A stretch of 64,000 nt of DNA from Oopsacas minuta (lineage: Eukaryota; Animalia; Porifera). This document shows, piece after piece, positions 3,190-39,700 of the stretch. Positions within the stretch are counted from its first letter, which is position 1. Each line of letters begins with the position of its first letter. The notes under the pieces are model-generated. The model was not told the origin of the DNA and searched no databases. It saw only the letters and a program-made list of their open reading frames with translations. The stretch lies in NCBI GenBank assembly GCA_024704765.1, contig JAKMXF010000011.1, positions 1 through 64,000 on the forward strand, in the 5' to 3' direction. The translations under genes and the position numbers were made by a program.

Positions 3190-3191
3190 TA

Positions 3192-11442: not shown

Positions 11443-11506
11443 TGAGAAAATATTCGCTATATGAAATTGATAAATAGAAAAAACAAGAATCAACAATTTC
11501 AACATA

Positions 11507-11953
11507 CAGTGGAAGCCGCTTAAACGGGCCAATGATTTGAGAACAGATTTTCTACATAGATAAATCACCGGATAATTGGGACATCGAATCGGTTAATCGA
11601 GATTTTTATCCCGATTAACCGAATATAAACTTTATAATCGCTTAATTGGGATTTCATCCCAAATATACGATTGTATATTTGTTCAGAATTATTGTAACAT
11701 GGTTTGTTTATAAAACTAGGAATTTTAATATTCTACAACCATAACAATACAACACCGATACAATTGCTATTTGAAACTAAGATTATTAACTCTGCTCACT
11801 CCCTATATAATCAGGGTGTAGTAGTAGTGTAATAAGATATTTCTGATTATGATCTGAGACCATGGAAACTACTTTTGAATACTTAAATATAACATCTGTT
11901 AATCGGGACAAAACATTGACTCTCGAGCTGTCCCGATTAAGCAGCTTCCACGG
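11507..11953. mobile_element. pogo/Tigger-like MITE (447 bp)
   Basis: TIRs cagtggaagccgcttaa / ttaagcagcttccacgg with TA on both sides (11505-06, 11954-55) and internal atcccgattaa/ttaatcggga repeats. Confidence 0.7.
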
Positions 11954-17157: not shown

Positions 17158-17427
17158 CCTATAATGTATATTGATGAAATTAATTGCGACGATGCAGCTG
17201 ACCATAGATAGTACTCAACCAGAGTTTAGGCATTTACGTATAAATAGATAACCCTAACTAACCATAGTTTGGCATCCCACTCATAATCCTCTCTCGTTCC
17301 ACGGATAGTCCTAAACCACCTCTAAAAAACTCTTTGTCCTTATGAAAGGTTGGCGTACGATGCTCCTGGTTCTTGTAATTATTATTGCATCCTGGCAACC
17401 CCCAAGTTATCTTCGTATCAGTAATAA

Positions 17428-20364
17428 CACAGTGGCACGAAATGACAGTTTGGTGGAAATAGCAATTTATGTAACAGATATGCATTTATGATGTATTATT
17501 GACGTATAGGTTATCTACCCTATACAACAGATTTACACTATCAGAATTTATATACGGCTTCGGAATCACGAGTCATGACGTCATTGGAATGTCTATATAG
17601 TTATTAGAAATATACTTAATCATCCTCTATTATGAGGGAATTAGCAATAAGATCTTGTTTACTAAGAGTATCGCTGTTACTTGAGGTACTTTTCCGCATC
17701 TTTCTGTTTAGTGGAAGAATCGGATCACTTTGGCAGATGATCCGTGGGAAAACATCTTTTAAGTTTTCTTCAAAGGAAACTTCCTCGACAAACGTTCTCT
17801 AAATCTTCTGAGTAACTTATTGCTTGACTCCAGACCACACTCTGATAACTGTTCCAGTCCATAACCATCATTATAATCAGAAATAATGCTTGCTGCATGA
17901 GCTAACAGTTTGTGCATTGTAGGGGTTATGTTAGCTCAAGAAAATTGCGTCAAAATCAGCTGATAAAGTTCGCGACATACTAATGAGAGTTCGTCTGTGT
18001 GTATTCTTCTATTAGAATTATATACCCGTAGGATGGCTCCAAGGTAGGTGTGGATATCAGTGATCACTTGTTTGCAATTTGATGGTAATACTGTCAAAAT
18101 TCAGTACAGGAAGTCTCTCTCACTATCATCTTTCCTCACTAAGCATCGTCTCACAACATTTCCAGTTGTAGAAGTTCCACCTTGTGAAGAAGCACAATCA
18201 ATCATCAAATTCAACTTTTCTTTTAACAAACCGCAAATAAAACTCTTGGTGTATTGGACTTTAGTAGAAGTTGGTGACCATTTAGTTACTCCAGCAGTTA
18301 GATGGCTTACCAGAGACATAAACCAACTGAAACACCTAAGGTATGTGTGTAAAGGTGAACCCGGGATTATGTCTATATCAGATTAAGGTGCATGCATAAG
18401 ATTAAATCTTTCGTTAGAACTTAGTGAGAGAAATCACTCTTCATCAACTTCTTCAAATATGATCTTTGCATCACTGATAAACCTATTGATGGGAAAGCCA
18501 TCCTGGACAAAAGTTAAATCGTGCATCTGCTCGAATGTAGTTGTGCAAAACTGACAACAAGCTCCTCCTGCACCACTCAAAATTTGAGCCATTTTTCCAT
18601 CAATTTGCGAACGCAAAATTTGCACACTAGCAGTGATACCATTAATCAAATTTAGACCATCATTTTCGATATACTCAGTCTCCTTGTTAACCATTGTCGA
18701 CATAAGAGAGCCTACATTTTCTAGATTTTCTTGAAGAGCAAGTATGGTTATTGGCCTTATCGAGAATGGGGAATTCGGAACAGAGTTCTTCCAGAGGAGT
18801 TTCCTTAGTGATTGGTGATAGAAAGCACCTTAAATCCAAATAATAGAAAGTCCTTGGTTGTTCAATTGGGATGGGAAGTTGCTTGTTGATAAACGCGGTG
18901 GGAACCTAACCCATCTAACCCATCAGATATCCGAATCTTAAGTGGTTGGTCATCACTGTCAATGGGAGTATTTGTGGATATTATCCTATTCACTGTGTGA
19001 GTGAGTAATGTGTGATAGGAAATGCCAATGCCAACCGGATATTCTCTTTCCACTATTTCCATCTCATCAATTAGGCAAATTTGACAACGATGGATTGCAA
19101 CTCTATTGTAACCAGGAAGAGTGATATCCTCATTAGTTAATATACGTCTTAGGTCGATGTATTTTGACTTCCCAATTTCTAATGAGTCTAGTAAGAAGCA
19201 AGACGAATCTAAAGAGAGTTTCTTGTTGAAATTTCCTAATCCATGACTCCTGGCAATTATATTTTTGCTGATATTAGCGTGCTAACATCATGCTCTTCCT
19301 GTGAATACAACAACAGTAAGTAGCTAGAAATCATCTTAGGTGAAACTTCTTCCTGCTGTGCGACAGCTTCCAGATGTAATCTCAGGTTGGCTAATCGATA
19401 TCATATACCTTTATTACTTAATTCGCTGATGTGCTTCCGAGATACTCGACTAAAATCTTCCTCGAATGCAATTGTAGATTCCTTGAAGGGTCTAGCTTCA
19501 TTTGAAGACTGTGGAATGTCATCCATTTGAGGATCCCTACAAAAGAGCAATTCCTCCCAAGTTGCTAAGTCCTTCTCTTTCAAATATATTTTTCTTTCAG
19601 ACTTAATATTTGAAAATTTTCGGCGGAAAAGGTCACAATTGGACTCTTCAAGATTATATTTAGAAATAAACTCACGAGCAATCGTACTAAACGCTTCCTC
19701 CGAGTTGGACATATATAGAAATTGAAGGCTTCTTTGTTGTTCATTAGGACGGAGTAAAATTGAAACTAATTAATAAACAACCATAAGATAAAATTCGTTA
19801 CAAACAAAAGGGCTGTAAATTACGGGACGACCAGTAGAAATAGTTGCAAAACTCAATTAGCGCCAAGTTGCGACAGGCTAGAACTAAGTTTATTTTGTTT
19901 TAAATATAACTTTCTTCAAAATAAAATCCAATTTACAACGGGCAACAACGGGCAAAGATAGTTGTGGCATTTAAAACTCAATTGACCAAACATAAATTCA
20001 CCAAAATTATTTGGAATTTCTACCTAGTATATTCTAAAAGCTAATATTATAATTTAGTAGTCATGTATTTCATTATAATGGCCACTTAAAGTACTTCAAT
20101 ATGACAGGTTACAATTTTCATATAAATAACTAAAACAAGAATATGTGTCAAATTCCTTTGGCTACTTTGAGAAACCTTGATTTTTGTGTTTTATCATGTT
20201 GAAGTTGCTTATCTAGAAATAACTATTGTTCAAAAGTAAAACTATCAAATATCATTATATGCTGTATTTCTGGGTTTCTGAGTATGCTGAATAAGATAGG
20301 ATTAATTAGATATCAAAATATCACTGTCAAATATTGCGCAATTTCCACCTGTCGTGCCATTGTG
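17428..20364 (-). mobile_element. Transib/RAG1-like transposon A (2937 bp)
   Basis: Perfect 5-bp TSD AATAA (17423-27 / 20365-69). Left end CACAGTG+17 bp+GGTGGAAAT; right end (reverse complement) CACAATG+8 bp+GGTGGAAAT. Confidence 0.92.
17677..19712 (-). pseudogene. RAG1-core-like (Transib) transposase A
   Basis: RKHISELSNKGIRYRL (NBD-like), RISDGLDGLG (D600-like), SQIDGKMAQILSGAGGACCQFC (D708 + CxxC), STTGNVVRR, TPTMHKLLAH, and SECGLESSNKLLRRFRERLSRK (cf. RAG1 SEGNESGNKLFRRFR). Frameshifted. Confidence 0.88.
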
Positions 20365-22859
20365 AATAAGTATGTATTCAAGTAATTATTCAACAACTAT
20401 AATTGATTGAATAAAAGAAAAGGGTTAGTAAACAAATATGCATGTAGTGTAATGTATTTATACTATACGATATACTAGTGCAGTATTCTGCGGTTCTGTA
20501 CGGCATTAAAATATCCATATTAACCTTAATTCAAGGAAGTGCCTATGTCCTAGTATACAAGAATGCTATGGCATATTTGAAATCATATTTCAAAGATGAT
20601 AAAGAGGTGGTATTTCCTGTGGTATCCTTCAGACCGCATGCGACCTGATAATCCAATATAACTGTCTATGACATGTGGTTTGACAGATAATTTATGCTGC
20701 CCATACCTCTATGTAATTTCCTACACTGAACAATCAATCTAGTAGTAAATTGGTAAATTTAGGTTTCGAATTATACATCGCCCATAATATTAATTATATG
20801 AATTATAAATATCTCCTTGTATGACGATATACACATTTTGGTTTTTGTATATGAAGAATGACCGCAAAGAAAAGGAAGCTCAAGAGGAGCTCCAAATATT
20901 CATACCAGGATGGGAAGGAGAGTTTCGTGTAACTGAGCACTATTTTGTTTGTCTGTAATTTGTGATTCACAAATATCTTCCATGAAGAGTAGCAATTGAA
21001 CGAACATTATGCAGCAAGGCACAAATTGTTTACAATGATAAATATCCAATGTACACTACTGTCTGATTGGCCAAAAAGCTGTACTAAGAAGAAAGCATTC
21101 AACAGTTGAGGCTTTGACATCATTCTGGAGTTAGGTACATGAGAAAAATCTGAGATTTATAGCAATTGTTCTGCTGTCAATATTTGGATCTGCGTAATGT
21201 TGAGAATAAGCTCGACTGTACTGTATTCTTTGATGAATGCAGTACAGTCGAAGACATGTAATAGTCTTACAACACAACACACATCAGAATTATTAAAAGC
21301 TGCAGGCACAAGTTATTCATCTCAATTCGAAGTTGTCCCTAAATAGTCCAAGTGCATCCATCACAATAGCATTAAATTATTCAACTATCTATCATGAAAA
21401 TTGATGTATTTCACATTACATATTAAACTTAGTAAATTCTATAATGCTTACAAGTAATTTGCATCAATAAGTATTGAAGGAATCAGGAGGACAAGTATAT
21501 TCAATAAGTTTCACCATAAATTGAATTTGAGCTATTGACATCGATTTCCGCCTGTACAAAACAATTTAAGACGATGCAGCCTGATCAGAGAGAAAGTTGC
21601 GGAACCCTGATCTATAAAAATTTTGTAACAAATTTCAGTATCTGAATTGTCCATCACCTGATCCATTTCATAAACCGTTTTTCTGTCTATAACTTGGTAA
21701 TAGCTTACTCCGCAGAATTATTCGCAACAAATTCCCATATATAATTCCTTATTTCTAACTTAGCTGAAGGTTTTGTAAATATATAATTAATACTGAATCT
21801 TAGATATAGCGTTTCTGACTACTTCTTTGAGTAATTGTTTCAATAATCAAATTGTTCTACTCTGAATGGGGTAATTTTGTATTTCATCAACAAAGGTTAT
21901 ATTGTTGCTTATTCGGTAATCAAATTTTCATCTCTTCTACAAAACGCCTCAACTGCTATCCTGATAGGACTCAATACTTGCAGATTTATATGGTGTATAC
22001 TTTGTGAAATTGGGCTTTAAGTTCAGGTGGATTATTTGGCATTCTGAAAATATGAACTCTGTTATCTGGGTAATAACTATTTTAGCTTTGTTTTGGCGCC
22101 ATAATATTATGTCCACTTGTGCCATATATTTGTGTCTGTATTGTCTGTAGTGTATTCTTCATGTGTGTTTGCAATATCCTATGTATTTCTGTATATTAAG
22201 TTTGCTGTTTGTGTGAATTTAGTTGTTGTTGTATATAGGTCTTGAAAGTGAAGTGTTTTGCTGTATTGATGAAACTGACTGAGTCTGGTTGTCATTCTGT
22301 TGGCGATATGAAGTTCTTCGAATGAAGAATTTCTGGATCTAAAGGATAAAGGTTTGTTTGTTTATTGTGATTGCACATTGTATGTAGATAGCATTCGGTA
22401 AATAAGATCCCAAAAGCTCTACGCTTTCGGAGGAAAATTGAATTATAATTAACAACACATACCTTTTGGAAACGAGATATGAGGAGGGTGTTTGAACACA
22501 CAAATCCCCCTTAGATACACCACTGATTGGATCGCAAATATTTTGTTCCATATAGAATTGGGATATATCGTTGAAAATGAATGAACTCATGAATTAAGTA
22601 ATTCAATAAATATTTAATTTGGTTTGATATGGTTTTTAGGTTAATGTTGGTTTGATGGACCATGTGCGCTTTAATTATCATAAAAGCCCCTACAAAAACG
22701 CCTCAATGTTCGCTGATCTATATCAGATTTTTGCATCTCCAGCCCCTTTAGGTACTCAAGTAAGTTGAGAGAAAGATTATTGAATAATTTTAATTATTTA
22801 TAATACAATCCAAATTATAGATATAATAGTAGTACACTCCAAATATAAACACACATGCG

Positions 22860-24762
22860 AGTTCGGATTCAGCGTACTTAGTTATCCCTGGGTAGTCGTT
22901 TAGAGCAAGCCTGTATGCATATTTTGAATTTTGGATAATTTGTTTACTATATATTCATAAAAACAACAATAAATTTACATTCGAGAAACTTGAAAGTTCG
23001 AAATACTGGTTCAGCGTATTATGTTACCCTGTGTAGCCGTTTAGAGCAAGCCTGTGCGTATACAGAGTTAGGTATAAGTTCTGCAACAAGCATAAACTTG
23101 TATATTTCTAATGTTACCAAAGTAGTAGCTGAGATTCGTAATGAATTAGTAAATATACATACTAAGGATACGAAAATAATCTAGCTCTTCGAATGTAGTG
23201 CCCTTTGCTGCGATACATTGGCTCAATCGCTGTAGAAATTATCGGCAGCGGCACGCAACACATCTTCATTGATTAAATCCCACTCTCATCTCAAGGAAGA
23301 CTTCAGACTTTCGAAATTCTTGTGAGGCTTTGCACATGCCCTGGACTCTAAGATGGATCATATACAGAAATCCATAGGGTTTAGATCTGGAGAAGAGGCC
23401 GGCCATTCTTCAGTTGATATAAATTCCGATACTTTGAGTTTCAACCACTCAGATGTCATTTTGGCTTTGTGGGAGGGAACGGAATCTTGCTGGAACACCC
23501 AATGCGCGCCATTGAAGTGCTCACCACCCAAGGCTTCAATGCGGTCTATAAAATGCTCTCTACATACACCTCTTTGTTAATTTTCACCCCTTGGTCAATG
23601 GACACGAGAGGTGTCCGACCATCAGAGGTAATGGCTCCCCAAACCATGACAGATGCAGGTTTTTGAGTTCTTTTGATTGTGCGTATTGATGACGAGATAT
23701 AATTTTGATCTGGAAATAGAAGTCTCCTGTTTTGGCGATCATATGCCTTTTCTACAGTAAAAATCTTCTCATCGGAGAAGACAATACTCTGGCGTGTGCC
23801 ACCAGTGAACCTTTTTCTCAGAATCAGACATTTTTCATACTTACGCCTCTTATTCACCTCAGAAAGTAACTGTTCCTCTCGAAATTTGTAGCATTTCAAG
23901 CCTAAATCCTCTTTTACTATCCTCCCCATACTTTTGGTTGAAATATTGAAGTCTTTTGCCATGCCTTGGATGCTTCTGACAAGATTTTCCTGACCCTCTC
24001 CCGGACGAGCTTCCTAACAGCGGGTGTACGAACAGGACGAGGTCTACCTTTTCTGAACCTGTCCTGGGTACTGCCAGTCTCATTGTAACGTTTGATTGTA
24101 TGGTAGATAATCCATCTGTTTATGGACAGTATTTTTGATAATATAGAAGCTGACTTGCCTTCATTATGATACAAGATCACTAATGACCGTTTTGCTTCTA
24201 TATTCATAAATCAACAAAATTTTTCTACTAGGACTAAAACTCTAAATAGTGTTTAGAAGATATTGAAGATAATAAATGATAAATACATACTCATCTAAAA
24301 ACATTCCCTGAACCTCTAGCTAAATTTAAATTTTGTTGCAGAACTTATGCCTAAGCCTGTATTTTGAGATTTTGGATAATTTGTTTACTATTTATCCATA
24401 AAACAACAATAAATTTACATTTGAGAAACTTGAAAATGCGAAATTTGTATCCAGCGTACTTATTATCCCTGCATAGCCGTTTAGAGCAAGCCTGTTTGTA
24501 TATTATGAGATATGTAGAATATGTTCACTATATATTCTTGAAAATTACGATAAATTTACATGTGGTTAATCCAAAAGTGTGAAAATCGGATTCAGCATGT
24601 AAGATATATTCAGTAAAGTTTATCTGATTCTATGTGCTTCCTTGATAAACACGATAATAGATATTTATGCGAGAATTTTAAAATCGCATACCGTAAATCC
24701 TTTCCTTGAGAACGGTTATAACAAACAGACAAACAACATTTGAGGTTTAATAATATTGATGT
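22860..24762 (+). repeat. DINE-1/Helentron-associated-like non-autonomous element with ~141-bp central tandem repeats (~3.5 units), interrupted by a maT element
   Basis: The unit (cagcgtac..tttagagcaagcctgt..tattttga..ataaaacaacaataaatttacat..gagaaacttgaaa) recurs at 22870, 23012, 24452 and 24593, a period of 141-142 after removing the insert. The tail ends acaaacagacaaac...tttaataatattgat. A homologous copy lies at 42352-47850. The HINE assignment is inferred from structure. Confidence 0.6.
23063..24359 (-). mobile_element. maT (DD37D) transposon, frameshifted
   Basis: 27-bp TIRs cagagttaggtataagttctgcaacaa / ttgttgcagaacttatgcctaagcctg with TA flanks. The ORF pieces from 24207 downward include VFSDEKIF and FQQDSVPSH...WPASSPDLNPMDF (37-residue spacing). 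Confidence 0.92.
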
Positions 24763-25609
24763 GTCCGGTTTTGATAATTAGAAATGTCTCAAGCCTACTC
24801 GATATTCATGAAAGCTAATGTTAAATCAGTATAGCCAATTTATAGCATACTAGCGTGCTTCAATTGCTAGGTCGCTAGGCGAGAGCTTAGTGCCTCAGTT
24901 TAGATTAAGTTATAAACAGTTAAATTTCTCAGTGCCTTTGATTACAACGTGACGGGATTAACTTGGTACTTCGTTCTTCGGGTGTATAATAAAGCAGAAA
25001 TTTTAAAGATTTTATCATCCATGGCCATACAAATTAGTTGAATTACCTTCTGTGGTGACGCTGGAGATGCTTTGTCGCTTTTTGCAGTATCTCGACACTT
25101 CACTGCTTCGGATAATAAGAAAATTTGAAATTTTGCGAAATTTGGAAAATTGGATTTTTTGTACAATGATGCAGCCGTATTCACTAAGCATACTTAGTAC
25201 TCAAGTACTAAGTATGTACTTAGTTAAGTACGTACTTAAGTATGTACTTAATTAAGTACATACTTAAGTATCACTTATATTCATGAATTTGTGAGTTTCT
25301 GATGGATTGCTTTACAGAATTACTTTCAATCATTCAGGAATATACTTTCAAAACTTTCATGGTTTATGCATGATCTCACGATAATATTGTGGTTTACGTT
25401 CATGAAATACTTCACAAATAATGCTACAAGGAATTCCTCAAACGCTTATGATATAACATATCTGTTACTAAGGAATGCATTACTTTGTACGTAATATTGA
25501 ATAATATCATTCTGAATTATACATTCCAAGTTACACTAATGATTGTTTTGCTAAATACAATTATGATCAAATATAATATATAAATATTCCAGTATTTTAA
25601 TATAAACAA

Positions 25610-26651
25610 ATGACACAGATGATTCCACTATTTCTCGCAGAAGAAGAAACCTCTTCCTCAATGGCACGTCAACGAGTTTTCAGGGATCTCAATGATCCCC
25701 TAGATTGTTATGATGATATGGAACTTGTTCGACGTTTCCGTTTCTCTAGAGTTTCAATATCTAAAATTACAGAGTTGATAGCTAACTATTTGAATTTCAC
25801 CGAGCGTTCTTGTGCTGCTTCCCCTCACTTGCAAGTTTGTGTGGCACTTCAGTTTTTCGCTTCTGGAACGTTCCAGATAATTTGCGGGGATGGGATAAAC
25901 GTAAGCCAAGCTTCTGCCTCTCGTTATATCCGAGATGTTTCTCTGGGTTTGCAAGCTATATACCATCAGTTTGTTAGTTTGCCTGGTCTCAAGAGGGTAG
26001 AAGTTAAAACAAGTTTTATGAAATTGCTCACTTTCCAGGCGTAGTAGGATTAGTTGACGGAACACACATACGAATCCAAAGACCCTCGGAAAATGAAGCA
26101 GATTATATAAATCGGCATTTTTACCACTCAATTAATGTCCAAGCTATTTGCCAACCAGATGGAATGTTAAGTGATGTATTGGCACGTTTTCCTGGGTCTG
26201 TTCACGATTCACGGATTTGGAAGAATTCAGGTGTTGGGATGCATGTTGAAAATACCTTTTCAATAGGGGGCATATATTAGGAGATAGCGGTTACATGATG
26301 AGGCCATATTTACTCACTCCTTATCGCCAACCAATATCTACACCCCAATTTAACTACAACTATGCACATAAGAGGACAAGGGTTATTGTTGAACAGACAT
26401 TTGGGCGATGGAAACGAAGATTCCACTGTCTTCATGGAGAGCTCAGGATGAGTCCAGATAAAGTTTGTTCCATCATAGTTGCTTGTGCAGTATTGCATAA
26501 CATAGCAATACAGTGGAAACAACCTCTCTTAGAAGATGAAGTCTCCGATTATTCCTATCCGGATGATGTTCTTGACTTTGAAGAAACTGTTGGGCATTTG
26601 GCATCAAAGCATTACAGGGATCAATTTTCTATTCATAATTTCAGCAACTAA
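25610..26651 (+). pseudogene. Harbinger (HARBI1-like) DDE transposase, frameshifted
   Basis: ALQFFASGTFQ, GLVDGTHIRI, ARFPGSVHDSRIW, LGDSGY, LLTPY, and AHKRTRVIVEQTFGRWKRRFHCL. Confidence 0.92.
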
Positions 26652-26748
26652 ATTCACATAGTATATATGTTGTGATGTAGATATGTAAACATTTTGCACA
26701 GTTAGTGATTATAAGGTAACATGGAAATTGTATTTTTGAAAAATCTAT

Positions 26749-26843
26749 GTAGGGTGTTGGTCTTTGTAGTTTTAAAACATCTAAGTAGGGTGTTGGTCTT
26801 TGTAGTTTTGAAACATCTAAGTAGGATGTTGGTCTTTGTAGTT
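26749..26843. repeat. 36-bp tandem repeat, 2.6 copies, between the two Harbinger genes
   Basis: gtagggtgttggtctttgtagttttaaaacatctaa begins at 26749, 26785 and 26821. Confidence 0.9.
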
Positions 26844-26952
26844 GGATATTTATTTGTGAAATGTATCAAGTATCGCACTTGAATTGGGAGCTAGTTGTTG
26901 CATTATGAAAACTATAAATTGGTGGCGGTTATTGATATTCCAAAGCAAGAGT

Positions 26953-27651
26953 ATGGACAAAGGTCGCAAAGTAAATTGGACAAAGGAGGAGGAGTATACA
27001 CTCATTGAGGCAATCCAGGATGCTGGAGATATATTGAGAGGTATTGCTGGTCAGTGCGCGGAGATAAACAAAAAAAGACGAGGCTTTGGAACAATGTTAT
27101 GAGGAAAATCAATTCTATCCATGGCAACAACCGAGATGTAAAAGATATAAAAAAAGAAGTGGAACAATCTAAAAGGTTCCGCAAAAGCCCGTGTGGATTC
27201 CAGTCGAAGGGAAGCGAGGAGGACAGGAGGAGGGCCAAATGAAGCTGGTGAAGTGGAGGATGAAGACATCCGCATCCTTAGCTCCGATAGGGAAATATCT
27301 ACATCTGTGACGGAGAGAGTATCACAGATGTTCTCAAGTACGCCAGCGTTCTCTGGAATATGTGGTAGTGTTGATATGTTTCAAGCCCCAACAACATTGC
27401 CTTCACACACTGAGATTAGCGAAAGCAGAGAAGTAACACTAGTGTTTGAGGGACCAGAAGTTACTGTAGTTAACAGTCATCCAGAGAGAAGGTATAGGCG
27501 TAAGAGGAGCATCGAACAGTCAACAAAGGTCTCTGATTTACTTCCTCTGCAACGAGAAGTGCTCCTTAAACAGATGGAAGTATTCTCGGCTCAACTACAA
27601 CTGATTGAAGAGCAGAGGGAGTATTATCGTCATAAAAGCAGAGACTTTTAG
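26953..27651 (+). pseudogene. Myb/SANT-like DNA-binding partner of Harbinger (MSANTD/NAIF1-like)
   Basis: MDKGRKVNWTKEEEYTLIEAI...KTRLWNNVMRKINSIHGNNRDVKDIKKKWNNLKGSAKARVDSSRREARRTGGG, reconstructed across two opposite single-base shifts in A-tracts (~27070, ~27155). Confidence 0.85.
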
Positions 27652-28255
27652 AAAAGATCAACAGCAGCAGCTTTAGATATACGATTTAGTCATATTGTAA
27701 CATCATAGAAAATCATAATTTATAGTGAAAGTATGAATTAATCAAAGAAAACGAGTGACTGAAGTGATTACATCAATGTTATCGCTTAATATACGTTTGG
27801 AAACTTAAAATAGAGCTTGAATAACTTAAGCAACCTCGGTAGGTTACTTAACTTTTGTATTTAAGTACATACCTAAGTATGAGCTTAAATCTTAGTGAAT
27901 ACGGTTTAAGTATGTACTTAGCACTTAAGTACTAAGTACATACTTAAGTATGCTTAGTGAATACGGCCCATGACATAAGAATCCAATGATGAGTTAGCTT
28001 TTGGTCAGAATCATGAAGCCTAAATGTGTGGTATATTGAGGGGTACCTATGATTTACATTTCAAACTTCTATCATGTACGTATATTGGCTGAGCAGTCCT
28101 TAATGATGTGATTATTCGATAAACCAAAGTTGTCATAATTTCGTCATAGGTGTGAATTTTCGTCTAAGACTCAAATTTTTCGAGCCAGACCCAAAATACC
28201 CCTGTATTCCAAATCTGCCCTGGGATCCTCCAATTTCTTCAATCAATTCTGGACA

Positions 28256-28312
28256 TACAATATATATGTAGATATATATACATATATATTTATAGAGAGA
28301 GAGAGCGAGAGA
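28256..28312. repeat. (TA)n/(GA)n compound microsatellite
   Basis: Direct reading of the sequence. Confidence 0.7.
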
Positions 28313-29649
28313 GATTAAATGCCTTTAAGGACTGGCAATGTAGCATATATAAAAATTATTTCAGAAATCATTCTTTTAAGAATGATTAGTTTTTATTCAC
28401 CTACAGGTGTTGTCTCCAATTTTATGAATATTTATTTACAGAGTCAATTTTACTATAACTTTGTTTGACATTTTCTATTCAGCAGCAGCAAAAATATATG
28501 TAATAGATATACTCCATGGTCCAAAATGCCATATCAACTTATTAATTGACAACATGTATCGGTTTTGATTCCAAATTTTTTTGTCAGACAATATCCATAT
28601 TCACTAAATATGGTTGTATTTTATTCATGATGATGCTTCATACTAAATGTACATATGTTCCACAATTCAACTCCCACATCAATTTTCACAGTACGTACTT
28701 GTCAATTTGGTGGACATGATTTAGTATCCGTCCATAAACTCTACTAGATTCAGAAACACATTCATTTCCCCCTTTTTGAAATCGGTGGCTTAGAAGGTAT
28801 GGTTTACTGTATATTTTATGATATATTCCTTACAACTTCAAAAGCATTTATGACAAACTTAGCGAATCTAAATTATGTATAGTCCACTCCGCTTAATAGC
28901 ATTATCTAGTTGATCCGGGTAAATACGAAGAGGTGAGAGTACGTCTGCCCGGCAAGCTACATTTGAGTTACAATAACATGGCCTCCAGAGAATCAGATTA
29001 TTTAATTCTCTTTCATCGACTATTTAATATTTTACACTAACCAACATATGCTTACTGCAAAATTCTACTTGCTACCTTAGTCCAACCATGGTTTAACAAG
29101 GCTAGGCCAACCATAGCCGAGATTAATCTACTCGCATCGCAATCGTCAATCTTTACCATTCTCCAAACATGTTTGGAGTAATTACAGTTTGGATTGTCTT
29201 TTACTCTAACTGATAGATAATGAATAATTCGAGATGTGTTTTAACCATTACTATCCGAAAATCGCCATTAGTGCGTTGTTTCTGCTAGCTCCTGCGGAAG
29301 GCTTTTTCTAGGTATCTTCGGCCCCTTTACAAATTTATCATTGAATGGTAGAAGTAAGCGTGGGGGTGCTCTATGCAGCCTGCGAGCATTTCATGCCCTT
29401 TGAACTTCTGGTATTACTTGTAATCTTATTTACCTTCTGTGTGTCCACACCCTTAGAGATTAAGACACCATATTTGGAATGTATACTCCTAGTGAGAATT
29501 AGTTATCATCAGGTAATCACTAGATTATGTAAGGGATAGCGTTAAGCGTGGGTAGTGGTAGTGATCGAAATAGTTTTCCGCTGAATAGCATGGCCGGATA
29601 TTCTACCTACCGATTAATTATCAAAAGATTCGATAGAGCTAAACCGTTT

Positions 29650-30316
29650 ATATTTAGGAAATAATTTGGCCTGAAACAACGTCAGAGCAATTGTTACATA
29701 ATACCCAATCGGTTGATTCTTTCCAAGTTTCGTCTTTGTCACAGGTTCTGGTTCTTTCTTGTGGCATATACTGCACAGGGTATCCGTCTCGTCCAAGCTG
29801 CTGGTTGAGCTAGAAGATCGTAAGTAACAGGAGAAACGCCACGCTCCTTCATACCTCTCTTCACTCCAGTACCTCCTCTACCTGTTATAACGATCCGCCC
29901 TCGAGCCTGATACACTTCTTCTATGGGGAATTCTCAGCCCAACTCCCTCCCTCTATAGCTTCTTCTGCCTTCTGCTTTCAATAGGGCACTCTCTCTTTGT
30001 TGCTTGAATAGTCTCGCTCTTCTTCTTCGTCTTTGATAATTCAACTTATTCTGAGCTCATCGAGAATAATCTGACCAGTATTCTCGTTTCAGAATTGCAC
30101 TATAAGTCCGCCAAGAGGGAGACAGGCCAAAGTCAGTTAGGATTCTCAATAGTGAAAGTTCGACTTGCATTTGGGACAGAGACTCCATATAGTGTTATGT
30201 AAGGATTCATTAGCATTTTGAGTCACTCCTAATGGCAGAATGCTACATAATTCTTCTGTCGCATGAGTATAGAATACTTCTTTCACCTTTCTATGTCAAT
30301 TGGTTTGAAGGTTGTT
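29650..30316 (-). pseudogene. C-terminal part of a Kolobok/Mutator-like transposase, with catalytic E region, basic tail and degenerate PHD finger
   Basis: KEVFYTHATEELCSILPLGVTQNANESLHNTIWSLCPK (30290-30160), then CSICHKKEPE...DWVLCNNC (29790-29690, frameshifted). It joins in frame-consistent fashion with 38294+ once Transib C is removed (SWCLLRNPSGSSASTALT|TFKPIDIE). Confidence 0.72.
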
Positions 30317-31050
30317 CACAGTGGTTTAATAGGGAAGTTAGTAAAGAATAGCTATTTTGGTGTGAGATAGCCATATGAAATGTATTATTTACATATCCAT
30401 TATTATATATAAGGAACCAATACATCTTGTCATAACAAGTATATGGCCCAAAATTTCCAAGTTATGACGTCATTGATACATGTGAAATTTTAAATTTTCT
30501 TCAATAAATACATTTTACTCGACTTTATCGCCATGAAATCTATTGATTACATATGGGTTATCCGTATTTGGCAATCAGCTTGAACTTAAAATTTTGTTGT
30601 AGGGCTTGTATTTATAGAGTCATGATGTCTTCAGAATTATGACATTACACTTATGATGGAATTTATCTTATTGATTTACAAAATATACCTTATATTCATA
30701 CTTAAGTTCATGATTGGCAATCTGCATTAGAGGTTAAAGTCATGAATAAAGTCTGTATACAAGTTTTCTGATTGTTCATAGCATTGCAGCATTTAGATCT
30801 CGTCATGTGTCTAGATTGACCACATCGTTCACAAGTCAAAATTCTTCGATAGTTTACTAAGATTAGATCACTTTGAGAGGTTAATCTGACGAAGATATCC
30901 ATAATATTTGTCTCAAAAGTAACTTTACGAGCTAAATTCTCCCGATATTTTCTAACTAATTTGTTCCATGATTCCATGCCTTCTTCTGAAAATGCCTTTA
31001 AGCCATAGCTAGAATTCGATTGACGTATTAACTCCTCGGAATGGGTCAAG

Positions 31051-34000
31051 CACAGTGGCTTAAAATGGAAGTTAGTAAAGAATGGGTACTTCCAGTTGAA
31101 ATATATATATATAATGTATTATCAGCATATAGGGTATCATATGGCGCATTCAAAATTTTTATAAGGTTTCTATATATCATGTTCTGACGTCATAGCTTTG
31201 TGCTGAATTTTGTTTTCTTTAATATCTGATTGTATAACAATGTTAGCCCTATAAATTGTATTATTTGAGTATAGTATATCATATCCATGGAAGCAATTGC
31301 AACTGTTAGAAATATAAAATTACTTATAAATTTATATAATGACGTCATACACAATTTTTTCATATTTTTGCTTTTGTACTTCATACTTCTAAATGCGTTT
31401 TTAGAAATTATTCATATCTTTTGCTAATATATATATATCAATTCTAACAATTTCTGGATAAAACAATAAGCAATTGTATTTAGGGATGTTTTATTTTTAT
31501 TTTTTATTTGCTAACATTCAGCAAACTACGTTGTTACAATATCATATCAATAATAAGGCCCTTAACGATATTATCAATAGATGATTCTAATAAATCTGTT
31601 GCATTGTCTCTACAGCACTTAGCTCTCCCGGTATGACCGTGTTCTCCGCACTTTGCGTACACCACTGTCGATCGATATTTCATTAACACAGGATCGCTTT
31701 CAGATGAGAGTCCGACAAATTTATCAACAACACTATCCTTGAAGGAATTTTTTCTTGCTAGATTTTCCCTATATTTCCTGATTAATTTGTTGCAGGCTTC
31801 GGATCCTTCTTCGCTAAAGCATTTCAATCAATACCCAAAGTTCATCTCTCTCAGTATTTCTTCAGAATGGGCTAGTAATTTATGTAAAGTCGGTGTAATG
31901 TTTACCCAGAAAAGGATTGAAAAATAAGGAAATAGGTATCCGTACAAAGGTTACCCAATTCTTCTGTATTGATTTTTCTGTCTGAATTTATGATTCTCAG
32001 AATGACAGATAATTATGTGTGCAATTTACAAAGTGAGTCCCTATGATTAATCTTAACCAAAGACATTGTGCATTCAATAAACTTGGAGTCATTTGAAAAA
32101 GCTCTTCGAGCCACACCGCCAGTGGAAGTAGAACCTCCTTTGGGGTCTGGTTGGTCTCATCTTAGACTTGTTACTCCTTGAACTATGGTTCGCATATCCA
32201 TCATAGAGTCTTTAATTTCTTTTGATGATGGTGACCATGTGAGCTTGTTACAATTCAGGTGGTACACAAGTAAATTTAACCATCTAAAAATGCACGTATA
32301 GGAATGTAAGGGAGAAGCAGGTAGAATATCTATTGTTGATAATGGCTGGTGAGTCAGGTTAAATCTTTGATTTTTTGGTAATGAAAAGAAATCATCAATG
32401 TCTTCCAGTTCTCCAAATAATTGAATGGCATCTGAAATGTTTCTATTGATGGGATAGCCTAGCAAAATTGACTCACGATCTTTTAGTTCTTTCTGCGTTG
32501 CAGTACATAGTTGGCAACTTGAACCTCCTGCTCCTGAGAGAATACTTGCCATTTTACCATCAAACATTGATTGGACAACATCGACAAATATATGTTTATC
32601 ATCGGCAAAATAGAAACCTTGGTCCCTCATTTGATCTGTTTCGGGATTGATGATATCTTTCATAATTTGACGAATATTGTCATGATTATCTGTGGCAGCA
32701 AGAAGGAAAATTGGACGTTGGGAGAATGGAGAATTCGGGCAGTTGTTTTTCCAAGGTTCCTTTCCACTAGAATTGACAATGTGTATTGCTTTGAAGCAAA
32801 ATAGGATGACCGATTTGGTAGACATATTCGTATTTGGTTGATTATATACAGTATGCTTTCCAGATCCATCTAAGTCATCAGCAATTTGAAATCGGAGAGG
32901 ACAATCCTCATTTGAAGGGGACGGTAGAGTGGACATAATTCTACGATAATGTATGGTAGACGAATTGAGCGTATGGCACAGACACACCAGCTGGGGCTGT
33001 AGGATTCAGGTATAGTTGAATCATACTTCGTAGTACTAAATTATTTCGACGATCGGCCACCCTTTGATATGTAGAAAAGTGAATTTCATTAGATAACAAA
33101 GTTGTCGTAGTAGAGTATACTTCCTCTTGCTAATCTCTAGTAGATCCAAAAGAAATAATGCCTTGTCCACATCCAATTCTTTGCTTTTGGATGCACGCCC
33201 GAATTGACCATCGAATTTTCCCTGCACAATTGATTTAGATACCCTTGCAACTTCTCGATTGTCTTCTTCATTGCACAAAAATTGCAAAGGAAGAGCTGCA
33301 ATTGTAATTTCAGAAGTTTTTTCAATTACCGAGATGGACTTGATAGACTCAAGGACACTAGAGATCCGGGAACGCTGATGTTTCAATGAAAGATTGATAA
33401 GTTCTTTCTTTTGGCGCACCGACCTAGTTTTGTGGGGGGCCTGCGAGGCTACAAATAATTCTGAGCAAATTTTCGAATGCCACCAATCTCCATGCAAAGA
33501 TTCAAGAGACTTTTTGAAGTTCTAATCATATCTCGTATTCTACGTAGAATCAATTCAAGTTTGGCCTGCTTGGCATCGTCTAATCCATGGAGATTGCTAA
33601 GATAACAGAGAGTTGTTTGGGCGCAATTGCCATTGCTTTCATGATTCTCGCTAAATCGAGACGGGATTCGGGGATGTCATCGGAGCAATTGGTTCAGCCA
33701 TTGATCACGGATACATTATCTGAGAAAATATAGGTGTATGATTGAAACATAAGTACACGTATATACACACGTATATATGTTTAATTTTGTGCAGTAATTT
33801 CCAAGAAGATTTAGGATTAGTTGGGTATTCAATTATATAGTTACAGATATCACTTTAGGAATGTCCATAGCAACGATTACAGACAATGGAATGTGACTAA
33901 AAAATCAAAGTTGCGCAGTGTTTCGGGCCTCTCATCTTCATATAACATAGTATAAATGTAAACAACAACTGGTACTATTTTCGCTTTGACGTTTCTTGAC

Positions 34001-34417
34001 TTTTTCTTTTCAGACACTTCAAAAATTTTATCAAATGGAAAAATGGAGTTCATTTTTTACCTTGGGTACAACAATCCTTCACATGAAAAGTACACAGTTT
34101 AGAATATATCTGATAAAAAATTTGAAATCAGTACGCAAAATTGTCTAGAATAGACGAAACAATAGATCACTAATATATTCTATACAGAATCAGAATCAAT
34201 ATGAATATCTTTTATATTTTGAATTCTCCGAAACGATAATTTCAGCATCAAAAACCACAAAGTTTCGATCCAAATTTTACATAACTAATAGGCTACCAAA
34301 TGATTCGAAAATTGGAATGGATGCAACTTGAATGTTTAGAAACACAATGAAACCATAAAGGAATGAAAGCATTAATATATACAAAATTTCTTAATTCTTT
34401 ACAACTAAGCCACTGTA
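31051..34417 (-). mobile_element. Transib/RAG1-like transposon B (3367 bp)
   Basis: 5-bp TSD TCAAG/CCAAG (31046-50 / 34418-22). Left end CACAGTG+17+GTAAAGAAT; right end (rc) TACAGTG+8+GTAAAGAAT. Confidence 0.92.
31534..33700 (-). pseudogene. RAG1-core-like (Transib) transposase B
   Basis: KKELINLSLKHQRSRI (NBD-like), QIADDLDGSG, SMFDGKMASILSGAGGSSCQLC, PLHSY, STSTGGVARR, FSEEGSEACNKLIRKYRENLARK, and a tail YAKCGEHGHTGRAKCC. Frameshifts and stops are present; the start position is approximate. Confidence 0.88.
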
Positions 34418-36342
34418 CCAAGAGCTTGTGCAGGGTTAGAGTCATGCTAGCCCAGGGGAAAGAATCTAAGATGACAAGGTAGGTATCCTTGCACAATTTC
34501 CCCAATTCCAAAGTGTTAACCTTGTGACTTGAATTGAAAACCCGAAGAATGGCTGAAAGCTGAGTATGTATCTTTGATAAGATTGGGCGATGTTGTAATG
34601 CTACGGTTGATAGAATGCATTCAAGGTATTCAGTTTCATCCGAAAAGGCTCTTCTAGCAACATTCCTGTTGAGGTGGTTACACAGCTAGAATTAGGCTGG
34701 TCAACCTTTAATCCTGTCTTCTCCTAAATAAATGTTTGAAGGAATTCCATTGACTCCTTGATAACTGTGAAGTTGGGGACCAGGTAAACTTTTCGATGCG
34801 AAGATGATATACCAGAAAATTCAACCACCTAAAATTTGTTTAATTATGTGAAGATAAGTTCTGGATGATTAATGGAGTACTAGATTACTTACCTAAATAC
34901 GCATATGTATGAATGAAGTGGAAATGCTGGATGTATGATAATCTCTGAAATTGATTGATGAGTTAAATTGAAGCGTTCATTAGTCGAAAGAGCAAAGAAC
35001 GACTCAATGTCATCAATGTGCGAAAATAACTCGATAGCATCTGTAATATTTCTGTTGATGGGGAACCCTTCAAGAACTAAATTCCGGTCCTTCAAATCTT
35101 TATGTGTGGCAGTGCACATCTGACAACTGGCTCCTCCGCTCCAGAGAGAAGGGCTGCCAACTTCCCATCAAACATTGAGCGGAGAATATCGACATTGACA
35201 ACACCATTTTCTAAAGGAATCCCATTTTTGCAACATCGGTGTATCGAGATCAATCATACTTTCCATGAAGGAACGAATATTTTCCTCGCATTCTGTCGCA
35301 GCGCAGAGAAAAACAGGCCTTTGAGAGAAGGGTGAATTAGGGGGATTTATTCTGCCAAACAATCCTGTTTGTTACCGTATGGATGGAGATGGGCTTGAAA
35401 CAAAACAGAACGAAGTTTTGGTGAAAGTATTAGTTGTCTGCTGGTTGTAGATAGTGCAACAACCAGAACCATCCAAGCCATCTGCGATTTTAAATGTGAG
35501 TGTGAATTCTTCACTTGTGGGGTGATCTACCATTGACCATATTCTTTCCAAGGTTTCTGAACTTGAAAAAAATATTGTGCGTGTATACCTATTGGTTTTA
35601 GCTGGATTAGGGTATAAAGTTATACTGGATCGCGAAATCATGGCATCTAGCTAACTTGCTGTAAGATGGGAAATGTATATTGTCTGATAGAAGTGTCTGA
35701 CATAGTTGAGTGTATTTTCGTCTGCCCACTTCAAGTAAATCCAGCAGGATAAGGCTTTATCACCTGGAACATGCTTGTTACTGAGGTTACAGAATCCTTC
35801 ATTGACAATAATCTATTTCGCTACCATAACAACCTGATGATTATCCTCCTCATTTGCCAATAGTTGTAATGAACGTGCTGCAATGCTTATTTCTGTAGTA
35901 TTATCAATAACTGAAATGACTTAATGCATTCTAACAGATTTGACAATCGAGTACGCTGTTGCTTCAGAGAGAGATCATCAAGATGCTTCTATGTCTCACT
36001 GAATGAATAGGAACTTCACCATCGTCAGAAGACGACTCTAGTAAATCAGAAATACGGTTTTTCTATAACTCAGGTTTCATGGAAATGTTAGAATGCCACC
36101 ATTCTCCTTCTAAACAATCCAAAGATCTCTTCGCCTACTTGAATCTGTCCCGAATTCTTAACAGCAAGGTTTCCAAGAGTTTCCTATTATCAGAGTCTAT
36201 TTCAAAGTGTTTTTTGAAATATTATGTCTTTTCAAAGATACACTATTATTGTCTTTCAGGATTCTTGCCGATTCAAGGCAGGACTTTGGGAAAGTTAACT
36301 CTTCTGTCATTGTTTTCAAGAAATTCTGAAAAATATATTGTA

Positions 36343-37655
36343 CAGGGTTGGGCATAAGTTCTGCCACAATATTATAATCCAGCCAAAAATTATTCCATTA
36401 GTTATTTGTATCTGTCATTTAGCTCAAACTTTGTTATAATATATATTTTTCACTCTTTCCCTGAAATTTTATATTATCTTAGCCTTTTGAAGCGATAATT
36501 GGTCATGGAGCAAGAGAGGTCGAAAATCATTGAATTATTTCAAGCAGGAAAAAATCCTTCAGAAATCTTCAATCTTCTGAAATTCCCTAATAGCAGAAGG
36601 AAGTTCATTACTCGAACTATTGAGCGATATGAAGTGACTGACGGGATTACTGATAAACCAAGATCTGGCCGTCCACGGTCTGTAACGACACAAAGGCTTA
36701 AAAAAGTAGTACGTCAACGAATTCGCCGAAATCCCCGCCGGTCCATGAGCAAAATGGCCAAAGAACTAAGAGTTTCACGTAGATCAATCGGACGAGTTGT
36801 TAAAAATGACTTGCATATGCGCTCTTTCAAGAGAAAGAGAGTCCATCACATCACGACCCTAGTGAAGGCAAAAAGAGCATCGAGAAGCAAGGGACTTCTT
36901 AAGAGGCACGCGATCCATGGTCTCAATTCATTCCTGTTCTCAGATGAGAAATTATTCACCATTGAGGAAGCAACGAACCCTCAAAATGATCGCATTATCT
37001 CATCCTCAATTTCTTCTATCCCAGAAGAACTTCGATATGTCAGCCGTATACAAAAGCCACTTTCAGTCATGGTTTGGGCGGGAATATCATCAATTGGCCG
37101 GACACCACTCATATTCGTGCCTGCTGGCGTAAAAATCGACACCCGAACCTACCGTGAGCTTATTTTAGAACCTGTAATACAAGATCTCTCTAAAACTATG
37201 TTTTCTGGGAAACCTTTCGTGTTCCAACAAGATGGTGCTCCAGCCCACACATCGAATGCCACTCAGGCCTGGCTTCGAAGCAATAATCCAGATTTTATTC
37301 AAAAGGAAGAATGGCCACCATACAGCCCCGATTTAAATCCAATGGATTATTCTATCTGGTCCATTTTGGAAACGAGGGCATGTTTGAAGTCTCACACCAA
37401 TATAGACTCTCTGAAAAAGTCTTTGTGTCGAGAATGGGAGAGAATACCCCAAGAAATACTCCGTGCCGCTGTAGAGGCCTTCCCTAAGAGACTAAAGGCT
37501 GTAATTGAAAGAAAAGGAGGATACATCGAATAATTAACGTATCTGCGAATCTATATACTATATTTAGTAGTACATACCGAATTTCAACATAATACAATAT
37601 ATCAATCGGAAAATATAGTTTTTTAAAAATGTGGCAGAACTTATGCCCAACCCTG
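36343..37655 (+). mobile_element. maT (DD37D) transposon, complete and apparently intact (1313 bp)
   Basis: Perfect 26-bp TIRs cagggttgggcataagttctgccaca (36343-68 / 37630-55) with TA TSD. It is inserted ~30 bp upstream of the putative ATG of Transib C. Confidence 0.96.
36505..37533 (+). CDS. maT DD37D transposase, 342 aa, uninterrupted
   Basis: First ATG at 36505. Paired HTH region with RSGRPR, FLFSDEKLF, FQQDGAPAH, and WPPYSPDLNPMDYSIW (37 residues between the second and third D); ends GGYIE*. Confidence 0.95.
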   Translation: MEQERSKIIELFQAGKNPSEIFNLLKFPNSRRKFITRTIERYEVTDGITDKPRSGRPRSVTTQRLKKVVRQRIRRNPRRSMSKMAKELRVSRRSIGRVVKNDLHMRSFKRKRVHHITTLVKAKRASRSKGLLKRHAIHGLNSFLFSDEKLFTIEEATNPQNDRIISSSISSIPEELRYVSRIQKPLSVMVWAGISSIGRTPLIFVPAGVKIDTRTYRELILEPVIQDLSKTMFSGKPFVFQQDGAPAHTSNATQAWLRSNNPDFIQKEEWPPYSPDLNPMDYSIWSILETRACLKSHTNIDSLKKSLCREWERIPQEILRAAVEAFPKRLKAVIERKGGYIE

Positions 37656-38293
37656 TATTATTCAGTAGATTATATATATAAGTAACTATAATAAATTTCA
37701 AGAACTAATTTCAATACTATTTCATTCCATTGTTACAGTATGCTACAATAGGAATTTCGTAGCACCGAAAAGTTGTAATGGAATGTCATTGAAAATTAGG
37801 TTGCGCACTATTTCGGGTTTTGTGGTTTTAGATTATATTTTTAGGAATCCTAATGCCTGTATCTGATTAATTTTGCGCAGTTGTTTTGTGTTGTTTATTT
37901 TTTCCTGACACTTTAAGCATTCCTCTTTATAAAAATTCTGTACCGATTTTACTAGATTTTAGAAATTTCATGTTCACAAAATATATAAATATACAGTCAT
38001 GGAAACAAGATATTTAGATTTAGCATAGTCGAAATGTATAGAGTATACCAGAGTAGTAACATTCGATTATGTAATTGCTCTTACAAGGTTCAGTTGAAAT
38101 TGGGTCTAAATTTAGAAATCATGAAGCCTCAATTTTCCTATGAATATTTCGCATCTTTGATGAAGAAGTTTTACAGCTTCTAGGGTCTCAATCGCTAGAT
38201 ATTTTATTTGAGAATCATTTAAACAATATAAAATGAATATAACCATCAAATACGAATCAATTTTTGTCTATTCTTTGCTTCTAAACTACTGTG

Positions 38294-39700
38294 TTGTCAG
38301 AGCAGTAGATGCTGAAGAACCTGATGGGTTTCTCAACAGACACCATGATGTCTTTCCAGTAGGACAGCCAAAATGATCCCCTGCCGCATTATCAACTAGT
38401 ATATGTAGAGCAGAACACAGCTTGATTGATGCTAGACCATGATGTTGATAGATGACAGTATATTAATTTGCGGCGATATAAGCAGCCTTCCATTCAGATA
38501 GTGCGTGTTGTACATAGTATTATTTTACGTACTTCTCTTCTTCATCAGACTCTTGACTACAGACGTTTCACGATCCATTAAACGAATGTTCACAAGATTG
38601 TATGGAATTAGTTCTTCACCTGCTGAAAACTTCTTGAACCTCCATATCTGTTAACTGAGTATGCCAGATGATTTTTCTCTGAGGAGCGTCCCCATATCCT
38701 GTTGGCTATTTCTGGCTCCATACCTTGAGAAGATCCAGTGTAGTTTCGATTTTAGTTTGGATTATGACGTTCTAACCACTTCTCGTACTCGGCTGACCGA
38801 TCTTTGATTTCTCCTCTGTCCAGATAGAGCACTTCTCACAGAGACGGCTCGTGATTTCATAGTCCAGTATCTTCTTGGTATCGCTAGAGATAACAGCACC
38901 GAAACCTATATTGGAATAGAATCCTATGGTCTTCCAGGAGCTATCGAAGCTGACGGTCACGTTAGTCGCGTTAGAATTAGGTAATACTTAACAGTCTGAT
39001 CTTTGGCGTACCAGTTTAGCAGTATCAGACATGGTACTCCCTACTGCAACTTTTGTAACAGTTTCTAGACAGCTCAGATATGGAGATTGCATGCTCTGAA
39101 CTGGTAGGGGATATCAACTATTGTAGATAGTTTGTGAATATTACGCCACTAAATACCAGTAGAATGTACAGCTATAGCACTCTACTGGATTGTATGAATC
39201 CATGAATCCATTTTTCTTCGTAAAGGGAAAGACTCCCAACACATTCGCTGCAGGAAAGGTGGAGAATACATCTGGTAGGTTGCTAACATGAAGAATTCTC
39301 ATTCCAGTTGGCATGCGTTTTTCTCTTTTCTCATGAATCTGAAAGTAGTAACACAGGTTTGGAACGCGTTGTTGGTGGAATGCGAAATTTAGCAATGTGG
39401 CCTCTGTGTGTGTGAGTAACTTTAGGTATTTGCTATTCTTTGCTCTAGGCAGTTTCGGGCAAAGCGGTATTGTCAGGTCTTGCACATCTGTAAGAGATGG
39501 TGACAAGTTTTATACGCATTTCCATAGAAGCGACGATTTCAAAGGCGTCCTATACATTTATCAACTGAAGACTATCTTTTTCTTGAGATGTTGTAGGAGA
39601 CAGTCCAAGTGAGGTGGATGCTTGAGAAATCCCTGAAGAAGTTGGACTAACTACAATCTGAGATGTAGAATCAGAATGAGGAGGACATAAAGGCAAGGTA
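38294..39700 (-). pseudogene. N-terminal/core part of the Kolobok/Mutator-like transposase
   Basis: VSFDSSWKTIGFYSNIGFGAVISSDTKKILDYEITSRLCEKC (first-D motif, D-G/S-x-W-x2-R/I-G type), NYTGSSQGMEPE, and DHFGCPTGKTSWC. Heavily decayed; termini not resolved. Confidence 0.72.

Follow-up and report, generated by a model that had tools for sequence, protein, structure and literature searches.

Three fossil RAG2-less Transib-type transposons share asymmetric two-part ends that differ by about one helical turn

Three decayed transposons in one window

The 64,000-nt stretch of contig JAKMXF010000011.1 analysed here (hereafter the window, to whose positions coordinates refer unless a locus such as L009 is named) carries three decayed Transib-type transposons, which we call A, B and C (Table 1). 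B is inserted in the transposase gene of C, and C is additionally split by a Tc1/mariner element; once both nested elements are subtracted, C's own sequence amounts to ~3.3 kb. The transposase remnants of all three elements lie on the minus strand, and the window-left ends are therefore gene-downstream (3') and the window-right ends gene-upstream (5'). In element A, tblastn with full-length relatives covered positions 17768-19439 on the minus strand, a coding region with several stops and frameshifts, while the remnants of the C transposase span 30708-31052 and 34964-35641, also on the minus strand. Despite this decay, the catalytic motifs DGSG, DGK...GxGGxxCxxC and SE.G.E..NK are still legible, and the DDE motifs of B are visible as DLDGSGKH, FDGKMASILSGAGGSSCQLC and SEEGSEACNKLIRKYR.

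All six terminal inverted repeats (TIRs) start with a CAC-type heptamer, which reads CACAGTG, CACAATG, TACAGTG or CACAGTA. A preliminary description of this DNA had quoted the six ends with a spacer of 17 bp between heptamer and 9-mer at the downstream end and of 8 bp at the upstream end, and each of them reads identically at its coordinates. The same description claimed target-site duplications (TSDs) of 5 bp for all three elements; the duplication is perfect for A and contains one mismatch in both B and C. Further copies or short derivatives of A, B or C were not found within the window.

Table 1. Ends, duplications and coding remnants of elements A, B and C, and the nested Tc1/mariner element
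Feature	Position	Strand	Detail
Element A	17428-20364	-	Decayed Transib-type transposon, 2937 bp; ends read directly, gene located by tblastn with full-length relatives
A, 3' TIR, long form	17428-17460	+	CACAGTG + 17 nt + GGTGGAAAT
A, 5' TIR, short form	20341-20364	-	CACAATG + 8 nt + GGTGGAAAT
A, TSD	17423-17427; partner 20365-20369		AATAA/AATAA, 5/5
Element B	31051-34417	-	Decayed Transib-type transposon, 3367 bp
B, 3' TIR, long form	31051-31083	+	CACAGTG + 17 nt + GTAAAGAAT
B, 5' TIR, short form	34394-34417	-	TACAGTG + 8 nt + GTAAAGAAT
B, TSD	31046-31050; partner 34418-34422		TCAAG/CCAAG, 4/5
B, transposase, longest open piece	32157-32987	-	276 aa, RNase H core; search query
Element C	30317-38293	-	Decayed Transib-type transposon
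C, 3' TIR, long form	30317-30349	+	CACAGTG + 17 nt + GTAAAGAAT
C, 5' TIR, short form	38270-38293	-	CACAGTA + 8 nt + GCAAAGAAT
C, TSD	30312-30316; partner 38294-38298		TTGTT/TTGTC, 4/5
C, C-terminal transposase remnant	30708-31049	-	Catalytic-E motif SEEGMESWNKLVRKYR, zinc-knuckle tail CERCGQSRHMTRSKC
Tc1/mariner inserted in C (separate from the Transib)	36343-37655	+	1.3 kb; perfect TIRs of at least 26 bp (CAGGGTTGGGCATAAGTTCTGCCACA), TA duplication

The elements encode RAG1-like transposases and leave no room for RAG2

Searches with the longest open reading frame (ORF) of B returned 602 relatives at E<=1e-3, mostly fragments, with some full-length proteins of 550-780 aa among them. The closest relative from a named organism (L006, 62% identity to B) comes from the glass sponge Oopsacas minuta. 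The full-length relatives carry the PF26100 RAG1_RNase_H domain, and a profile built from 13 relatives matched HzTransib (6pqn, 4e-71), the amphioxus protein BbRAG1L (6b40, 4e-47) and RAG1 (~1e-36). Against RAG1, the profile aligns from the GGRPR nonamer-binding helix onwards, and against the solved HzTransib chain from a point further in. No Transib or RAG1 match was obtained in a Pfam search of the ORF fragments of the window, and phmmer of the B ORF against PDB sequences gave no match, so the family assignment rests on the relatives and their profile. At the C-terminus, the relatives have a zinc-knuckle tail (CxxCxxxGHxxxxC) to which the tail of C corresponds; in B the tail (YAKCGEHGHTGRAKC) has lost its first cysteine, and in A it is decayed.

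The elements' own lengths of 2.9-3.4 kb are occupied by one RAG1-like reading frame, and, apart from the nested mariner, no ORF of at least 80 aa within them has a family match. A RAG2-like gene would not fit into elements of ~3 kb. A, B and C are thus RAG2-less members of the Transib/RAG1 superfamily, as the RAG1-like identity given in the preliminary description had anticipated. By their CTT1 tail, the region equivalent to the nonamer-binding domain (NBD) and their asymmetric TIRs, they match the Subgroup I Transibs of Tao et al. 2022.

A shared register in three divergent families

Elements A, B and C each represent a different family in fossil form and are not recent copies of one another. 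At the DNA level, B and C are ~70-75% similar, in patches only, and A matches neither of them; within the protein core, B is 45% identical to A and 45% identical to C. Given this low identity and the differing block sequences, the equal spacing has been conserved through long divergence.

One explanation of the shared spacing is chance or misassignment: the 9-mers could coincide in AT-rich DNA, or the paired ends could stem from different elements. A 9-mer match of at least 8/9 at any offset is indeed common, occurring in 32% of random pairs of such AT-rich DNA, and the 9-mer shared by B and C means that cross-pairings between them score as well. It is the common register, not a shared 9-mer as such, that makes the pattern significant: at the fixed offsets of 17 and 8, a match of at least 8/9 was obtained in only 5 of 20,000 random sequence pairs (2.5e-4 per pair). 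The pattern of heptamer, 17 nt and GNNNNGAAT has three matches in the window against 0.21 expected, and none of 100 shuffles reached three. When all offset combinations were scanned across the window, the +9 diagonal held only A, B and C. Moreover, within each element the two ends carry the same 5 nt directly behind the heptamer (GCACG for A, GCTTA for B, GTTTA for C), which agree with the TSDs in tying every end to its partner, and the same register is present in independent assemblies (see below). Chance does not account for the shared 8/17 register, and this explanation, misassigned ends included, is refuted for practical purposes.

Short upstream and long downstream spacing in relatives

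DNA fetched around relatives from other assemblies extended the sample to seven complete elements (A, B and C included) and five single ends. In L007 (~28% identity to B), a 5' end of TACAGTG, GTCTGACA and AGCGGTAAT faces a 3' end of CACAGTG, 17 nt and AGCGGTAAT, which is again 8/17. The ends of L008 consist of CACAATG followed by 8 nt and GGCAGCACGG upstream and by 18 nt and GGCAGCACGG downstream (8/18; TSD 4/5), and those of L009 of CACAGTG followed by 6 nt and CACGCGGACA upstream and by 16 nt and CACGCGGACA downstream, a 10-bp difference. Neither L007 nor L009 showed a direct TSD. L003 (63% identity to B) has a perfect TSD (GTGTA) and a 3' end with 17 nt before GCAAACATT; the state of its 5' end is considered in the Discussion. 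Single long 3' ends were recovered from L004 (17), L021 (17) and L024 (18), and single short 5' ends from L005 (8) and L025 (7-8), the latter being the one usable 5' end among six short loci from a narrower scan of metagenome contigs. The layout is kept in relatives at 24-63% protein identity, namely in all defined pairs except L003 and in all single ends.

Some of the relatives' ends had first been located by searching for the 9-mer of the partner end, which biases the comparison. A later scan used only terminal identity of at least 11/12 bases and then perfect shared 9-mers at any offsets. It returned the same offsets as before, with a 9-bp shift in A, B, C and L007 and a 10-bp shift in L008 and L009, found nothing for L003 and detected no symmetric Transib pair. 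These results support short-upstream, long-downstream spacing as a conserved trait of the clade, with 8 (+/-1) upstream and 17-18 downstream, in a small sample with L003 as an unclear exception. The preliminary description had proposed a length-based synapsis rule for the lineage, with a 9-bp difference and analogous to 12/23, and had named variable spacer lengths or symmetric ends in other family copies as evidence against it. Such a rule is a reasonable proposal. What stands is the polarity of short and long ends, and no symmetric pair has come to light; an exact 8/17 throughout the clade does not, as the long spacing is 17-18, the difference is 9 or 10 bp, and the upstream 9-mer of L003 is weak.

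Two relatives raised further points. In the sub-lineage of L009 (39-54 and 3885-3900) and L021 (3116-3127), the inverted repeat extends outward beyond the heptamer, as AGAGCATTT and CATTT, respectively; the real end of the element may be situated beyond the heptamer, or else the flank may belong to a palindromic sequence that is preferred as a target. In addition, an identical Transib-like protein of 955 aa is found on 12 contigs (L010-L019) from different marine samples (Tara Oceans and others), where it is followed by 44-bp tandem repeats; this element is probably active in an abundant planktonic eukaryote.

Each end consists of two co-varying blocks

The segment between heptamer and 9-mer is not free sequence, as its first 5-6 nt are identical at the two ends of an element. 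Alignment of ten long ends required no more than one gap, and that of nine short ends none. Each end divides into a proximal block, composed of the CAC heptamer and five element-specific bases, and an element-specific distal block of 9-10 bp that reads roughly nGYGGAAAT. At the gene-upstream end, the blocks are just 3 bp apart, which corresponds to a spacer of 8 bp if counting starts at the heptamer. In A, B and C, the 9 nt by which the long end exceeds the short one contain AAATGG or ATAGGG and then AGTT, and AAAT(A)GG is present in ~8/10 long spacers from the window and the relatives.

Both blocks co-vary between the two ends. Identity of the distal block averages 7.6/9 within elements and 3.2-3.4/9 between them, and six of the seven complete elements have an internal match of 8-9/9. 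For the 5 nt after the heptamer, the corresponding values are 4.9/5 within and 2.4/5 between elements.

The 3' ends also contain subterminal blocks that have no 5' counterpart, namely ATGTATTAT at ~+64, TATAnGG at ~+124 and the palindrome TGACGTCAT at ~+148. At a distance of 134-148 bp from the gene-downstream end there is also a CRE-like palindrome, TGACGTCA, which often reads ATGACGTCAT. A, C and L003 have it at exactly 148 bp, B at 134 bp and L021, a distant marine family with three copies of it, at 144 bp. Of the five TGACGTCA sites that the window contains, four belong to this set (17576-17583, 30465-30472, 31185-31192 and 31340-31347). The palindrome may act as a subterminal site for the transposase or as a site for a host bZIP protein.

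Several short ends have a candidate A-rich tract, similar to the nonamer of the recombination signal sequence (RSS), after the distal block, ~18-20 bp from the heptamer (ACAAAAATT, CAAAAATTG, ACAAAAATC). It occurs in C (38249-38293), L007 (238-282), L025 (155-199), L009 (48-92) and L008 (2591-2635).

Discussion

Asymmetric two-part ends with a difference of 9-11 bp are already known from Transib, AanRAGL, PflRAGL-A and ProtoRAG. Transib families with an RSS12-like 5' TIR and an RSS23-like 3' TIR were described early on (Kapitonov & Jurka 2005, PMC1131882), and the hypothesis of Yakovenko et al. 2021 was built on an earlier published observation. Tao et al. 2022 (PMC9435367) report TIR asymmetry for every Subgroup I Transib. 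A layout of heptamer, TR2, asymmetric spacer and nonamer with a 10-bp asymmetry was described by Martin et al. 2023 (PMC10629977), who also argued for asymmetric TIRs in the ancestral RAGL. The 8/17 spacing as such is given in none of the papers that we found in the literature, and Figure 1g of Tao et al. 2022 may show a member of this type. The suggestion in the preliminary description that 8/17 is an undescribed spacing therefore holds for the figures themselves, as far as these papers go, and not for the underlying architecture.

Individual systems come close in different respects. One is MleTransib_2823 of Mnemiopsis leidyi, a Subgroup I member (Tao et al. 2022). Like A, B and C, it lacks RAG2 and encodes a RAG1-like transposase in which a CTT1 zinc-knuckle tail is combined with an NBD-equivalent region, and its ends are composed of CACAGTG with five matched bases, a spacer that differs by ~10 bp and a second matched block. 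The supplement of that paper gives the Mnemiopsis ends as CACAGTGGGGAT, followed by 2 or 12 nt and the matched block, a 10-bp difference. Here, however, the distal block starts 8 and 17-18 bp from the heptamer, whereas the second block of MleTransib_2823 (ATGACATTAAG) lies at 10 and 20 bp; moreover, its long form is the authors' 5' TIR, whereas in A, B and C the gene-downstream end is the long one.

In AanRAGL from Aureococcus anophagefferens (Tao et al. 2022), the TIR has elements of 13 bp and 10 bp that are separated by a spacer of 4/13 bp. It shares with A, B and C the two-part TIR, the 9-bp difference and the 5-bp TSDs; counted in this way, our elements consist of 12 bp, 3/12 bp and 9 bp, which is almost the AanRAGL layout. 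Unlike them, AanRAGL has a RAG2-like gene and other block sequences, and it is active in culture. The insect elements Transib5, Transib2_AG and TransibN1-3_AG (PMC1131882) combine a short 5' TIR and a long 3' TIR, a polarity shared with A, B and C, with a CAC heptamer and 5-bp TSDs, but their spacers are ~12 and ~23 bp, their nonamer is A-rich and they belong to a branch with a different C-terminal tail, Subgroup II according to Tao et al.

ProtoRAG/BbRAGL-B and PflRAGL-A likewise have a conserved region (TR2) next to the heptamer, followed by an asymmetric spacer and a distal element; in contrast to our elements, they encode RAG2L, with 27/31 spacers in ProtoRAG and a 10-bp spacer difference in PflRAGL-A. 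The V(D)J RSS resembles the ends described here in its consensus heptamer CACAGTG, its two-part signal, a spacer difference of approximately one turn and a homologous enzyme core that includes the NBD region. It differs in spacing (12/23 versus 8/17-18), in its distal block, which is G-rich here (nGYGGAAAT) and not ACAAAAACC, and in the use of RAG2. Neither A, B and C nor their relatives, with spacers of 8 and 17-18 bp, fall within the 12+/-1 and 23+/-1 bp of RSS spacers.

With a probability of about 0.72, we consider A, B and C to be fossil RAG2-less Transibs of the Subgroup I (CTT1) type, whose two-part ends bound the transposase and whose one-turn offset favoured the pairing of a left with a right end. 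The anatomy of the ends, their conservation, the co-variation between them and the protein family are shown by the sequences; the domain roles and the pairing preference are proposed by analogy with the RAG, BbRAGL and HzTransib complexes and with the dissection of the ProtoRAG TIRs. Each end would be a two-part transposase-binding site, the proximal block being held by the catalytic core and the zinc-knuckle tail, and the distal blocks of both ends by a dimeric NBD-like region. The NBD is a dimer in RAG1. Given a difference of 9-10 bp, the distal block of the long end would lie on the same helical face but ~3 nm farther away, rendering the two ends structurally distinct. Either one end would have to bend or the NBD dimer would have to tilt, so a left-right synapse might fit best, and the A-tract in the long spacer could contribute an intrinsic bend. 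The transposase would thus favour one left and one right end, similar to ProtoRAG with its 27/31 spacers and RAG with 12/23.

At the 23-RSS, the bend is provided by HMGB1. A stricter version of this model, in which an 8-bp end pairs exclusively with a 17/18-bp end through an NBD-like dimer and the A-tract replaces the HMGB1-induced bend, appears unlikely to us; if true, strict pairing would constitute a genuine "one-turn rule" that predates RAG2 capture.

Alternatively, the asymmetry might be inherited baggage: the extra motif of 9-10 bp (AAAT(A)GG...) could serve as a bend, a host-factor site or a regulatory signal of the 3' end, with the transposase accepting any pair of ends. The sequence conservation of the extra segment, which may indicate that the additional turn serves another purpose, is in line with this view, as are the other conserved blocks specific to the downstream end (ATGTATTAT at +64 and the TGACGTCA palindrome at ~+148) and the transposition of L003 without a clear upstream distal block. 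RAGL-B enzymes have also been argued to be fairly insensitive to asymmetry (PMC7204232). Against this account, the spacing is maintained within 1 bp at both ends across families of ~25% identity, while the flanking blocks change together, and no symmetric pair was seen. ProtoRAG, the sole relative tested for pairing, prefers asymmetric TIR pairs, and its CTT* domain helps TIR recognition (PMC8289069); it has likewise been reported to depend on asymmetric 27/31 TIRs (Tao et al. 2019). We regard the account as rather improbable and favour two-part binding sites with a preference for left-right pairing.

Several points weigh against this preferred interpretation, in addition to the conserved extra segment. 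All three elements are dead, with stops and frameshifts in each of them. The sample comprises few elements, and the long spacing differs by family, being either 17 or 18. In L003, a search for the 5' distal block at any offset found only a weak candidate (6/9 at offset 7), and the perfect TSD of this element implies that a matched distal block is not obligatory. Matched end pairs could not be defined for L001 and L002, and recognisable TIRs were not found in L006. In the P0161 family (L010-L019), the 3' side runs into the 44-bp tandem repeats on the 12 Tara and other marine contigs, which yielded one 5' end only, and the contigs of L020-L023 end short of the 5' end. The Mnemiopsis element has its long form at what its authors call the 5' TIR, so the polarity is not universal in the wider group. 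Finally, a study of BbRAGL (Martin et al. 2020, PMC7204232) argued that the RAGL enzymes of invertebrates depend for the most part on the terminal 15-17 bp.

The 12/23 rule may originate from asymmetric transposon ends or may have arisen after RAG2 capture. With A, B and C and their relatives, the RAG2-less Transibs gain a broad clade of mostly marine origin. In it, a one-turn asymmetry with fixed polarity is held down to ~25% protein identity, and the two ends of an element co-evolve in both blocks. This clade-wide asymmetry, together with the co-evolving blocks, lends weight to the published view that the whole RAG/Transib superfamily had asymmetric two-part ends from the outset; by themselves, the elements do not alter the overall picture. 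Their ends also offer compact substrates of 24 bp and 33 bp for the study of end discrimination without RAG2.

Other transposons in the window

The window is largely a nest of transposons. The Tc1/mariner element nested in C contains an uninterrupted transposase ORF of 344 aa (36499-37533) with HTH_32 and DDE_3 domains and may still be active; diverged copies of it are located near 42926-43941 and 23278-24363. Further Tc1/mariner transposase remnants (HTH_Tnp_Tc3_2, DDE_3) lie at the left of the window (1774-4341), and an ORF at 10519-11568 encodes an NHL-repeat beta-propeller. A P-element-like transposon at ~43949-47573 carries one ORF with a THAP domain (44398-44886) and one of 553 aa with TNP-like RNase H and GTP-binding insertion domains (45575-47236). 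Its near-perfect TIRs of at least 60 bp suggest a young insertion.

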